Made by a program: the position numbers and the translations under genes
Assembly (NCBI GenBank): GCA_965644315.1
Contig: CBFFRQ010000095.1
Location: forward strand, 124,001 to 188,000
Origin: Caecitellus pseudoparvulus
Taxonomy: Eukaryota; Protista; Bigyra: Bicosoecida
Length of the DNA stretch: 64,000 nt
Reading direction: 5' to 3'
Notes under the pieces: generated by a model
Databases searched by the model: none
What the model was told of the DNA's origin: nothing
Seen by the model: only the letters and a program-made list of their open reading frames with translations
In this document: piece by piece, positions 41,107 to 58,124 of the stretch
Layout: each line of letters begins with the position of its first letter
How positions within the stretch are numbered: the stretch's first letter is position 1

Positions 41107-42183
41107 ATGGGATTCTGCAGGTCGATTTTGCAAGTGCGCAAGGCAGTGCTCAGGCCACTCCTCGGTGCTACCATGGGCGGGTGCCTGGATGCTGTGCTGA
41201 GTGCCAAGTGCACCTTTGTTCGCATGGGGGTGAGTGCCCTGCATGCCCCGACGCCTATGAAAGGCCTTGGGGGTGTGGACCCGGCTCACGGCTGGCTTGT
41301 GTCTTCTCGTGTCGCAGATCGGAGCAGTGGAGGACTCATTCCTGGCGCTGCTGCAGCCAGCTGTACTTGCAGAGACGTACAAGGCGCTGGTGCAGCAAGA
41401 AAAGAATGGGGTAGAATTGAAGCGACACCTGCACTTCATGGAGGAGTGCATGTCCATGACGCCTGAGGTGCTGATGAGGGAGATGGAGGAAGGGTGGACG
41501 AAGAGGCCTGAGAGCATCAGCGAGGAAGTCTGTACGGAGCTGTGGAGGGTCCACATGCGCCAAGCGTTTGAGGATGTAGTGCGGAGACGAGCGGGGGCTT
41601 CACTGGGTGACCAGCAAGTGCCTGCCGCCATCTGAGGCAGCAAGCACTGAGCTTGTGCCAAGCATGGAGCCCTGAGGATGCTGTGGCCCTCGCTCAAGTG
41701 TTTAATCATTTCAACCCCAAGGAGTTTGACGACTTCCTGTGCGACGTGAGCCTTTGTCCAGCCAACGAGATGACGCGAAGACACGGGTGCTCTGCGTTTG
41801 CATGCGTTTGCCCCTGCAGCGACAAAGCTCTGGATATACTCCTCATTGATAGCCCATGGATGTTTTCCCGTCAGTTTCTGCTGTACCGCCTGCAAATGGA
41901 GCAAGCAAAGTGTGGGGGCGAGTGCTTTGGAGCTGGAGATAGCGACCTACCTTTCTTGCGAAGTAGATGGCGCCCCTGCCATTCTTGTAGAGCCGCCATC
42001 CTGTGCCAAGGCGAACATCATCTTGTCTCAGGTATCTGCAGGGAGACGATTTGTTCCTCTGCTCGATGTGAGGTGCTCCGTGTCGTGGCTCGCGTCCTCA
42101 GGAGAGCGATCTGTGACCTGCAGCGCAACAGCTCCGGCCAGAGACGGGATGGACGGCGCCAGAGGTGCAACCTAGGCCTTTGA
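41107..42183 (+). pseudogene. Probably frameshifted gene carrying one copy of the novel ~150-aa module shared with the 54.6-58.1 kb gene; intron 41230-41317
   Basis: Spliced AVLSAKCTFVRMG|IGAVEDSFLALLQP aligns with the modules at 55-56.3 kb. The frame stops at 41635, while protein-like sequence (HLRQQALSLCQAWSPEDAVALAQVFNHF) continues in another frame. Confidence 0.5.
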
Positions 42184-52802: not shown

Positions 52803-54263
52803 TCACTTGCCTCTCACGGCATACCACCACGCATTCGCAGTGTAGCGCTCGATGTCACCCACCAAGGACATCTTCAGTTTCTTGGCCAGTGATGCAGCTC
52901 GCCGGAACTCAGGACCGGCGCCCGCGCCCACACCGCCCGGCGGCACCATGCTCACCATGGCAGCAAAAGGGTTCTGCTGCAGGGGAGCCAGGCGCTCCAG
53001 CCCCCCCCCCATGCTGTGCCACACAGCTGTCTCACCCAGTCCGTCCGTGTCGTGGTTTGCGCAGGAACACACCGTCACCATGCGCGAGGCCAGGCAGGCG
53101 CGCAGGCTTGGCAGCCAAGACTGCAGCAGCGCTCCGTTCGAGTTTCCAAAGCCGGGGTTCGGGATGAAAAGCAGCGTGTTTCCCCGATGAAGCTTGGCAG
53201 TGCCAATGGACATCCCTGGGGATCCTTCACTTGTCGTCCCCTGCCACAGCGGGCTTTCAAAACACCGCGCAAGAAACACATCCACTGTGCCGCGAACGCA
53301 TCGAAAACGCACAGCTGCACCAGTGCCAGAGCAGTCCTCGTATGGCAGCACATCGTGCCACTGCCCCACACACATGTCCTGCGCCGTGTCCTCTGTTGCC
53401 TGCGCCGCGCTGTCTCGAACGTCGACTTCCGGCCCGACAAGCACGAACGACAGCCTTTTCAGCGACACTGACCGCCCTGCTGCCGCACCTGGCATGGAGC
53501 CAGCGACCCGCACGCTGGGGATGGCGGCCAGGACTTCTCGGAGGTAGGGCGTGCATGCAGCCACGCGCTGCTCAGCCTTGCGTGATGCGCCTGCGATGAC
53601 GACGACCACTTCAGGCTGGGCTGCGGCGGCGAGGGGAACGACAGGGCACCACGACAGGGAGCGAATGGCGTGCAGTAGCGTGAGGGCGAAGGAGAGACCA
53701 TCGAGTGTGGAGGGGTGATATTGCACGCATGTCTCACCCTCCCCTAGGGTCTGTGGCGGCACCGGTGCGGTGCTGGGCACGGCTTGACTTCGTGGACCGC
53801 GTCGTTTGCCAGTTCGCAGGAGGGCCGTGGCAGCCACCTTGGGGAGGCCAGACACCCCAGCCACTGAGGGCGGCAGCTTGCCGTCCTTGCTGAGAGTCCA
53901 CGAAGGTGGGGTGGGAATGGCGCAGAGTGGGCGGCTCAGAAGGTATGCCTTCCACCCGACGACCTTGCCGGTTCGCAAGCCAGCAGCAGTGTCTGGCGGC
54001 AGGGCTGGCAGCCACTGGAAGACATGTGAGTTTGGCCACCGAAACGTGCCAGACATGCTGGCATCTGCAGCGGCATCATCACCGCACTGGCATGCAATGC
54101 AGTATTGGAGCGCCATGGCTTCGGCAGCAGCCTGCGTTTTGGCCGCGTTTCGGACACCGCTGGCGGCAAGCCGAGGTGCGTCCCGGTCAGCAAAGGCAAA
54201 CTCAGACAGTGCAGTGCCTTCCTCGCGCGCATGCAACAACCGAATGAGCTCATCGGCGGCCAT
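52803..54263 (-). CDS. MSS51-like C-terminal domain protein
   Basis: VVVIAGAS, LSFVLVGPEV, LFIPNPGFG, SWLPSL, VTVCSCAN and QNPFA match the motif order of the Mss51/ZMYND C-terminal (methyltransferase-like) domain. Confidence 0.7.
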   Translation of the reverse strand: MAADELIRLLHAREEGTALSEFAFADRDAPRLAASGVRNAAKTQAAAEAMALQYCIACQCGDDAAADASMSGTFRWPNSHVFQWLPALPPDTAAGLRTGKVVGWKAYLLSRPLCAIPTPPSWTLSKDGKLPPSVAGVSGLPKVAATALLRTGKRRGPRSQAVPSTAPVPPQTLGEGETCVQYHPSTLDGLSFALTLLHAIRSLSWCPVVPLAAAAQPEVVVVIAGASRKAEQRVAACTPYLREVLAAIPSVRVAGSMPGAAAGRSVSLKRLSFVLVGPEVDVRDSAAQATEDTAQDMCVGQWHDVLPYEDCSGTGAAVRFRCVRGTVDVFLARCFESPLWQGTTSEGSPGMSIGTAKLHRGNTLLFIPNPGFGNSNGALLQSWLPSLRACLASRMVTVCSCANHDTDGLGETAVWHSMGGGLERLAPLQQNPFAAMVSMVPPGGVGAGAGPEFRRAASLAKKLKMSLVGDIERYTANAWWYAVRGK

Positions 54264-54650: not shown

Positions 54651-57600
54651 ATGTTGTCCAGAGTCCTGCATGCAGCGTCGTGCGCCGGACGCAGCCTGCA
54701 AAAAACAGGGCTCAAAAATGCGCGCTTTACCCCTTCCATGTCCCCTGCAGGGCACTCAGCTGCGCCGAAAGTCATCATTTACCAGCTACCTGCAGTATTT
54801 TCCACAGTGGGGGCGCCGTTTCATGGGCCTCAGCCTGCAAAACCTGCTTTACAGAGTGACAAGCACCCTGCTCATCTGCGTTTCGGCCAAGAGTCACTAA
54901 ACCCTGCAGTGGAACAGCACACCACAGCCCTGATCAGGGAACTCCACGCAAGTGGTATTGGAGAGGGTGCTATTCAGAGTGCCACTCACGCTGTTGCCAC
55001 CTTGAAGGTATCGTGGAGCTCCTAGTTTGGCACTTGGCCCAGCGAGCCAACGCAACACCTGTGCTTGCGCAGAGACCCCCTGATCCCCACACACTGTCAG
55101 TCTTGCTGGATCCTAGCGTTGTGGAGGATGCTTTCAAGCACTTTTCTGGTGCAAGCAGCCCTGGCCGCGCACAAGCTGAATTCCGCTGGTTCTACCAGAA
55201 ATGTCTGCCGTTTGGACCGGGGTTCCTATCCCGGGCGATGTCCATGTCCCGCCCGCCTGGGCTGTACGACTTGCCCGAGTCCCTCGTCTTGGCACCCTTC
55301 ATGAGCCCCCTTAAGCACAAGATGATGGAGGCCTCATTGAACATGAGCGCCACTGACAGCGCAGTCGCACACATGCGTGACTCGGTGGCTGCTTTCTTGG
55401 ACGCTGTCATGCTGAAGGAACAGCCGCATAACCGGGAGCCTGTCTTCAACGCAATCGCTGCACTGCAGGCCAGCTCGTGTGACAAAACGGCAGTTTTGGT
55501 CGCACAGTACTTGGTGCTGAAGACTATTGTGCGTGCCTGAAGAGGGGCTTGGCTGAGAACAAGCACTGCCATGTCACTGCAAATCTGCGCACTTGTGCCC
55601 GGTGCAGGACATATTCCAGCTGGAGCTTGCCCTGGCAATGCTGAATCCAGTTGTGTGCTCCAAGCTGCATGCGCTGTTCGGCTCCAGTGTGCACGGTGCT
55701 GGCTTTGAGCAGCACGAAGCGTTCGTACGCAGATGGATGCCTGTCGCACCCTCAGACGTGTTGGACAAAATTGCCACCGGATCCATGCCAGCCCCAAAGG
55801 GTGTGGATGAGGCTGCATGGATCTCGTTTCTCGAGCAAGGCTTTACGCCAGCTCTGCGGCAGGCGGAGCTGGATGGCGAGGTGCACAGCATGCGAAGGCT
55901 CGTGTCTGTTTGCTTCGAAGCAGCGATGGAGACGCTCAGTGCAAAGGACCAGTCGCGAGTCCGGGGCGCCTGTGCTGAGCTGCACGCAAGCTCGATTGAT
56001 GACGTCACTGTCCTGACAGCTGAGGCGGCGCTGTGTCGGGCTATGGTGAGAATGCCTGCTGCCTGTACTTGGCCGCTCCAAACGGCACTCGCCAAGCATA
56101 TCGCCACGTGTCCGTGCTCTTGCGCTGTGCAGGGGAGAATCTACGTAGACTCGGCCCTGATAACGTTGAAGCCAAGAGTTGTGCACACGCTGGGCACGTT
56201 GGTGGGCGAGCCAGCGGGCTCTCTTCAGGCGGTCAAGCGGCATGGAGCGCTCCTTCAGCATTTCTGTGAGACAAGCCCTGCACAGTTGACGCAAGAATTA
56301 TGCCTTGCCTTGCTGCATACACGGGATGGTGTGGAGGAGGTTGCTCGGACAGAGCCCCGAGAGGATGGAGCTCCCACAGCACTTTGCGAGGAACCGGAGG
56401 CTGCCAAGGGAACCTCAATCCTCCACCCCCAAAGCTTTCAGGCCACTGGGCCCTCGAACCAGACGCCGGGCTGGGGTGTACGTCAGCGTCCGTTCCTTGG
56501 TGATAGTGCTGGAGGATTCGACCCTTGGCAGCGGATGTCAGACTTGAATGGGAGCAATTTGCAAGTTGCTCAGAGCTTGCTTGGTTGGATGAGACAGGCT
56601 GGACCAGCATTCCGACTTCGAGACCCGAAGCAATGGCCCCTTCTCCACGCCCTGGCACAGCAGCATGAGAAAGCTGCCATTGAGCCAGTGGCAGATTCCC
56701 AGAGCATGCCGGATCTGGACCCCTCCAACTTTCAGTGGAGCCTGGGGTGCCAGCCAGTCATAGTTGATGGAAAGCTGGCTGCAGCCACGCTTCGATTTCC
56801 GGAAATAAGCTTCGGCGGGATAGGCACAAACCGAGTGTCCCAACCATGTGATCTTGCACCATTCAAAGAGCCTCTGTGGATCCCAGCAGCGCCTTTGGGG
56901 TTCGGGGAGTTTCGCGAGGCAAGCGCAGGCCAAACCCCAACCACGGAACTGCACACTTGGACCTTCTTGTTGACTCCACAAATCGCCAACTTTCTGGTCA
57001 AGGCCATCTACGGCCTCGATGGCAGGAACAGTGGAGTCTTCCTGGCTGGCCATCGCGATGTGGGCATCTCATCCTCGCTGCGTGCGTTGGAGTCTCTTGT
57101 TTGCATCGCTGGGCATGGAGACGTGCTGTACTTGGACGACGCAAGTGTCCTTGCGCCGACCGCAGACAAGGAAGAGCTGCGTCGAGCTTTGTTGCAGGGG
57201 ACTTTGACGTTCTCCTGCGGCCCAGGCCTCACTTCACTGAGAGTCCACTCACTGCTCAAGAACATTGCCGAAGGAAAAGACACTGAAGCCTCTTTGTCCG
57301 AGCTTCTGGAGTGGTACTGCGCCCCCGATGAGCCCCACCATGGCGGCCAACCGCCGCCGCCTCGGATGCTCATCCTGGACAATGCGAACAAGCTTCATGC
57401 AGAGTACTTGAGGCATGGGCAGAAAAGTGCAGACCGCAGGTGGAGGACAGTCGAAAAACTCCTCTCCTGGACAGGTCGGCCGAACAAGGTTCTGGCGTAT
57501 GGGGAAGACTTCCGGTCCTTCCGCATACCAGGAACAGAAGGCAGGGGTCCTTTCTTCGACTTTAACTCGCCAGGAACGTTGCCGGACTCTGTTTGCGAGC

Positions 57601-58124
57601 TGACCCCCCTGCCAGTGGAAATGGCTGTGCAGCTGATGAGTGGTCAGCGCCAAAGTGGGGGTGCATCTGCATATGCCTGCCATGTAGATGACGCGACGGT
57701 TGACTCAGCAGAGGCTGGAAACCCTTTCTTGCTCCCAGGGCCCGTTCGACAGCTCTTGGACAGCAGCTCGGATGCACTTTTCAGCCTGAAGCATTTCGCG
57801 CACGAACTTGGGGCAACACCATCTGTGATGCTCACAGTAGTGAAGGCCTTCGCAAATGTCGCGCGGCTTACCCCCGAGCAGTTTGGTCAGAAGCTGGTCG
57901 ACGTGAAGAACGAGTGGATGCGCGAGAAAGCGAAGTGGTGGGAACGCCATATTCGCGAGTGGATCAACGAAGATGAGAGCCGAACTGATGCCGAAAGGAC
58001 AGCTACTTTGCGTGCCATCCAGCAGGCTGCTCGCGCACATCTATCAACTGGCAAGAGTGAGAACGTGCACGCATCAAACCACCTGAGCGACGAGGCCCCA
58101 GACGGAGCAGATCGCGGGCGGTGA
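54651..58124 (+). CDS. Multi-exon protein: three tandem ~150-aa novel helical modules + degenerate P-loop NTPase-like domain; introns 55008-55072, 55529-55607, 56046-56132; 5' end uncertain
   Basis: Three phase-0 GT-AG introns join ORFs 54633-55025, 55013-55540 and 55593-58124 in frame. Walker A-like GVFLAGHRDVGISS and Walker B-like RMLILDNAN are present. Confidence 0.7.

Follow-up and report, generated by a model that had tools for sequence, protein, structure and literature searches.

By sequence comparison, a helical repeat of 147 residues appears to be previously undescribed and to form a large gene family in one marine protist species. In the window, that is, the whole 64,000-nt stretch of Caecitellus pseudoparvulus DNA that was analysed, three such repeats precede a P-loop NTPase-like domain. 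The mapped duplications and exchanges of the repeat point to unequal crossing-over of an intron-containing domain and not to the shuffling of exon cassettes.

The spliced frame of the window gene opens with the ATG at 54651, closes with the stop at 58124 and comprises 1080 codons. Its parts are as follows, with the two NTPase motifs of exon 4 given last:

54651..55007 (+), exon 1, 119 codons: presequence-like N-terminus, low-complexity spacer and first helices of repeat 1
55008-55072 (+), intron 1, 65 nt, phase 0, within repeat 1; same site in the C43 paralogs
55073..55528 (+), exon 2, 456 nt (152 codons): second part of repeat 1 and first part of repeat 2
55529-55607 (+), intron 2, 79 nt, phase 0, within repeat 2
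55608..56045 (+), exon 3, 438 nt (146 codons): second part of repeat 2 and first part of repeat 3
56046-56132 (+), intron 3, 87 nt, phase 0, within repeat 3
56133..58124 (+), exon 4, 663 codons and the stop: final part of repeat 3, then a linker, the P-loop NTPase-like domain and a helical region
57048..57071 (+), degenerate Walker A, GHRDVGIS, with Ile in place of the Lys of the paralogs
57366..57383 (+), Walker B-like motif, MLILDN, aligned with paralogs

A sequence-only reading had proposed four phase-0 introns, three in this gene and one at 41 kb. All four were confirmed at their donors (introns 1-3 and intron 41230-41317), each with GT..CAG ends, phase 0 and junction peptides matching those it had quoted, as were the lengths and 0-0 phase of the two internal exons. 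In length and in their ends, the introns are like those of the p28 dynein light chain gene, also located in the window, and the GT and AG of intron 3 are retained in a divergent allele (L031/L038). At the RNA level, a contig of run X2 (seawater, labelled metatranscriptomic) joins 55527 to 55607, with intron 2 removed, the removal being exact given a G at 55528, an allele found in a second strain; this is one contig of depth 2.8 with 18 nt on its short side, and thus support rather than proof. The junction of intron 1 was not seen among the contigs examined.

Exon 1 starts with MLSR, has a net charge of +5 over 30 residues and 0 acidic residues in 60, and its start and frame are kept in the C43 paralogs; its tail scores against positions 118-145 of the repeat profile. 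A possible fifth, out-of-frame copy had been suspected at 54790-54850. That region scores -1.9 bits against the profile and is another frame of exon 1, and a contig of run X1 (54665-54917) passes through it without splicing, so the suspected copy falls away. Exon 2 scores 143.6 bits against profile A1, of which it is itself a member, and is 57% identical to the orthologous exon of C43. Repeat 3 ends within exon 4 (approximately 56133-56350; 31 bits to profile positions 5-71). Upstream, at 52803-54263 (-), lies a divergently oriented neighbour with a weak match to the MSS51 C-terminal Pfam family (E 2.8e-5).

Exon 3 as a single query gave 62 matches in the window's own genome, and a profile built from 24 exons gave 123 on 19 contigs, with no already named domain matched. 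Genome-wide, all 83 pairs of adjacent profile matches (83/83) are separated by 63-110 nt, so every copy seems to carry an intron. The 44 full internal exons, found in 30 loci of the same genome, are all 143-153 codons long and stop-free, and 28 of the 44 are below 90% identity. The earlier claim of an intron at one fixed codon in each copy extends to the family, since both splice sites lie exactly at the profile-predicted positions in 39/44 exons and within one codon in the other 5/44, against a chance expectation of approximately 3e-4 per exon. This test is partly circular, as 11 seed exons set the ends of the profile; the non-seed exons (C93, C43; L032, L034, L035-L040) behave the same as the seed exons. 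Arrays consist of 1-7 repeats.

Among 1.84 billion proteins, the profile found 36 credible matches. Those mapping to the studied loci do so at approximately 68-99% identity, and four distant ones that were tested map to other contigs of the window's genome at 84-99%. This is an indication that, at the sensitivity of HMMER, the repeat is restricted to the species or its close kin. Three public gene models (CAE7819400.1, CAE7440250.1, and CAE7334364.1), which come from the same organism but are filed as Symbiodinium sp. KB8, agree with this splice position in paralogs at several junctions and depart from it at others. The corresponding assembly (GCA_905221625.1) has contigs 85-98% identical at the protein level to the window's organism and thus contains contaminating DNA from outside the dinoflagellates, the genes of which bear a wrong label in NCBI. 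One of the models, CAE7334364.1 (L036:1606-5087), joins an ankyrin-repeat ORF to a repeat gene and probably represents two merged genes, its ankyrin part being approximately 50% identical to ankyrin ORFs at window 16450-21285. Other sequences are found upstream of repeat genes as well: a phosphoglycerate-kinase-like fragment on a metagenome contig (L034:1-322), possibly a chimeric assembly, and, before a repeat-only gene, the C-terminus of another protein, which is single-copy and carries a nuclease-like QxK motif (L032:1-1527, equivalent to G000:C62:9950-11473).

The repeat is predicted with confidence to be all helix (pLDDT 95.9, pTM 0.87), on the basis of a junction-spanning stretch of a public gene model and a 48-row alignment, and in the model one 40-residue helix connects successive repeats. 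No match was found in Pfam and none of significance in PDB, BFVD or Atlas, with the window protein searched exon by exon; low scores are no proof of a new fold where helical bundles are concerned. The fold search gave no solenoid match either. A likeness to the C-terminal subdomain of TBC RabGAPs was set aside, as it is below a meaningful level for helical bundles, shows 4-14% identity and has no sequence support. These results support the earlier proposal of an unnamed, all-helical repeat of approximately 147 residues as a variable N-terminal region on an NTPase.

The exon is not the unit of the repeat, as had been supposed. The intron is located at model position 57|58, whereas the structural matches fall into two distinct stretches, 1-105 and 148-205. 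Genes open with profile positions ~90-147, the last third of the exon-defined module, and close with positions 1 to ~90, its first two thirds. Since the structural unit 1-105 spans 57|58 and the gene ends agree with it, the natural domain straddles the intron, its exact boundary being estimated from the predicted model. The window gene thus comprises three domains, each with an internal intron.

Breakpoints of duplication and exchange were mapped in several family members, two of them at the following places in the window:

55950..56560 (+, approximate), allele-swap tract of the estuarine allele L031/L038, with both ends exonic (exon 3 and exon 4)
41180..41669 (+), the 41-kb copy, a detached 3′ fragment of a C38-type repeat-only gene at 89% nucleotide identity: last 50 nt of an exon, intron 41230-41317 (88 nt) and last exon 41318-41635

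The estuarine allele is 61-88% identical to the window within the tract and 97-100% in the flanks. It also has an in-frame stop in the linker, right after the repeats, which would yield a repeat-only product from the window locus. In C43, one gene has an extra repeat, contained in a near-identical tract of approximately 580 nt with a 530-nt period that begins near codon 70 of one exon and finishes near codon 88 of the next. In C54/C38, the homology between an NTPase-type gene and its repeat-only neighbour begins near exon codon 99, and the repeat sequences of the NTPase-fused and repeat-only genes are 85-100% alike. The 41-kb copy had been read as a fourth module of another gene. Its intron stands, whereas the copy itself is a detached fragment of 490 nt, whose homology begins within an exon, 50 nt before the donor, and which differs from the C38-type gene by 13 synonymous and 13 non-synonymous codons.

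According to the sequence-only reading, symmetric exons would be duplicated through introns or skipped, giving variable N-termini. All internal exons are indeed 0-0 and in register, and skipping would preserve the frame and yield a hybrid domain. However, tandem duplication of a unit with one intron makes identical phase automatic, so the 0-0 symmetry is no evidence for exon shuffling. Every mapped breakpoint is exonic, the tracts starting and ending inside exons, and as introns make up approximately 1/7 of the unit, this fits homologous crossing-over anywhere in it and not intron-mediated shuffling. The domain straddles the intron, and neither introns at domain boundaries nor recombination through introns, by which exon shuffling is recognized, was found. 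No skipped junction occurs among the RNA contigs, which are too thin to exclude skipping. Overall, the exon-cassette model is very improbable. The nearest pattern on record is that of the LRR arrays of Tetrahymena with 90-bp exons, which were attributed to unequal crossing-over (PMC6564038). Those arrays likewise have one intron per repeat in a single phase, clonal expansion, a copy number that varies by unequal crossing-over, and fusion to other domains, but the present unit is a 147-residue helical domain with phase 0 introns, arrays of 1-7 and exonic breakpoints.

Approximately 55 paralogous matches to exon 4 were found, most of which belong to open frames 1000-1200 codons long, and a repeat lies upstream of the NTPase on C26, C32, C54, C74, C87, C93, C95, C109, and C196. 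A full-length member (L036) has an intact Walker A (APSGYGKS; GEGTGKT in C54), a Walker B, the helical region and then a further 380 residues with an FP-x-x-D...LECS pattern. The paralog NTPase matches AAA_16 and AAA_22 weakly (E 0.006 and 0.018, respectively), in support of the NTPase assignment. The C-terminal tail has 39 matches in the own genome, nearly all directly behind an NTPase match, and shows no match in Pfam, NCBIfam or PADLOC; a REase-like motif seen by eye makes it a probable nuclease.

A point that the sequence-only reading missed is that the NTPase of the window copy is degenerate and lacks this C-terminal domain. The replacement of the Walker A lysine by isoleucine is also present in two metagenome alleles, and the gene stops before the nuclease-like tail, as it does in these two alleles, one of which has the additional stop behind the repeats. 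The tail is present in the C43 gene, the closest paralog, and has no match on the window's contig and no remnant downstream of the stop (58122-58124). Among other loci, only the last 100 residues of a C32-type NTPase-nuclease remain at G000:C65:30450-30746, opposite the C65 repeat-only gene. Several of the NTPase-nuclease paralogs on C74, C93, C109, C196, and C87 have TGA stops inside the match; these are either broken copies or have stops near the C-terminus.

Many family members, also overlooked before, have no NTPase, and most repeat arrays are not fused to one. A repeat-only gene is placed tail to tail with an NTPase gene, 1.8-2.4 kb apart, on C26, C32, C43, and C93, and the C32-type convergent pair recurs in an independent assembly (L036). 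On C38 and C54, repeat-only genes are located upstream in tandem, and perhaps so on C74 and C196. For approximately 25 of the 37 strong NTPase matches, no adjoining repeat could be detected, and in the L036/C32 pair the partner's repeats are not the ones that the NTPase's own repeat resembles most. The window gene has no partner gene within 12 kb. Its repeats are most similar to those of the C43 repeat-only genes, whereas its NTPase is most similar to that of the C43 armed gene, which suggests an origin by recombination within such a pair.

Crinklers in the strict sense have a ubiquitin-like header with LxLFLAK and HVLVVVP motifs. The present header is instead all-helical and shows neither a Crinkler Pfam match nor an LxLFLAK/HVLVVVP header. 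In STAND proteins the sensors are normally C-terminal; here the repeats are N-terminal and no match to a STAND/NLR family (NB-ARC/NACHT with C-terminal sensor repeats) was found. Header-only paralogs beside a header-bearing NTPase are known from CARD-only and PYD-only proteins and from paired NLRs. The adjoining genes described here follow the same arrangement, but without death-fold or NLR homology, and the likeness is one of logic only.

The closest resemblance is to the CR (Crinkler/RHS-type) proteins of the NTPase+HTH+REase class, which PMC5289972 reviews after Zhang et al. 2016 and in which unrelated, often helical headers are described on an NTPase and REase. In common with that class, a lineage-specific N-terminal header, here helical and unrelated to the enzymatic part, precedes a P-loop NTPase, behind which come a helical region and then a nuclease-like tail, and the family is large, recombining and present in a free-living eukaryote. 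Walker A and B are both present in the C54 and L036 paralogs. The family differs in that the header is a new tandem repeat and not Ubl/LxLFLAK, with a presequence-like start, that many header-only genes are paired with armed genes, and that the window copy has neither the Walker A lysine nor a C-terminal nuclease domain. None of the CR/RHS families gave a significant sequence match; a search with Pfam RHSP (PF07999) found nothing, its control being uninformative, since the control genomes were silent as well.

We tentatively favour, at somewhat short of an even chance, a reading that assigns the window gene, as a disarmed and decoy-like copy, to a lineage-specific Crinkler/RHS-like family, whose armed proteins would consist of a presequence-like start, 1-3 header repeats, a P-loop NTPase and a nuclease-like C-terminal domain. 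The many members made of the repeat alone, beside an NTPase gene and often tail to tail with it, would use the repeat as a protein-interaction module, attach to the armed protein at its header or body and keep the nuclease in check, as an antidote or decoy by analogy with CARD-only proteins. Recombination would re-deal the binding specificity, and the window protein would act, if at all, as a decoy. The compartment may, on the weak ground of composition, be the mitochondrion. The architecture, the pairing and the repeat sequence shared between NTPase-fused and repeat-only genes on C54/C38 speak for this reading, as does the estuarine allele, which stops after the repeats. Against it count the weak purifying selection on the allelic changes of exon 4, the nuclease assignment by eye, the missing CR/RHS match, the many NTPases without a repeat and the mismatch of repeats in the L036/C32 pair.

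The repeats may instead be variable sensors of ligands such as viral or parasite proteins, as in paired immune receptors, the repeat-only gene sensing and the NTPase-nuclease executing, in the manner of paired plant NLRs; the window gene would then encode a sensor whose dead NTPase is retained as a scaffold. Divergence and swapping are much more rapid in the N-terminal repeats than in the NTPase part, many members are situated close to contig ends, and NB-ARC/AAA clusters are among the language-model neighbours of the NTPase (0.79), which is a lead only. We consider this unlikely, though the most serious competitor, given the N-terminal position of the repeats, the lack of any STAND-specific motif or family match, and pairs that are convergent and not head-to-head. 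More doubtful still is a role as organelle factors, in which the repeats would recognise mitochondrial RNA or DNA and the tail process it in the PPR/OPR-RAP manner. All 6 inspected starts are M-L-S/T, basic and acid-poor, and 4 of the 6 pass a presequence-like filter, against 5% of internal windows, in this heuristic test of composition. A repeat of 147 residues without solenoid likeness, in a species-restricted, recombining and often broken family, is however unlike housekeeping factors. To a comparably low degree, the window copy could be a decaying, functionless recombinant, only the armed paralogs being of importance. Its dead Walker A, missing tail, stop in one allele, lack of a nearby partner and weakly constrained exon 4 would agree with decay, but the 1080-codon frame is intact, no indel occurs across 2.85 kb of the second strain, the codon changes listed for exons 1-3 are 7 synonymous versus 8 non-synonymous, and spliced RNA is seen.

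In its most far-reaching form, the favoured reading would make each armed NTPase-nuclease and its repeat-only partner a mitochondrion-targeted toxin-antidote (or sensor-executor) unit of a free-living protist. A new helical fold would set the specificity, crossing-over between the partners would re-deal it, and the window gene would be a toxin turned antidote; we regard this full version as improbable, if slightly less so than the organelle and decay readings.

The scope is one species; the anatomy is secure, whereas the function is inferred and the window copy is disarmed. Within this scope, the family offers a clear case in which exon shuffling does not appear to account for uniform intron phase, which would result instead from unequal crossing-over with exonic breakpoints. 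It adds an apparently undescribed, confidently predicted repeat domain and a Crinkler/RHS-like family with header-only partner genes, and the linked armed and repeat-only pairs make testable how CR-type nucleases may be kept from harming their own cell and what role headers may have in free-living protists.
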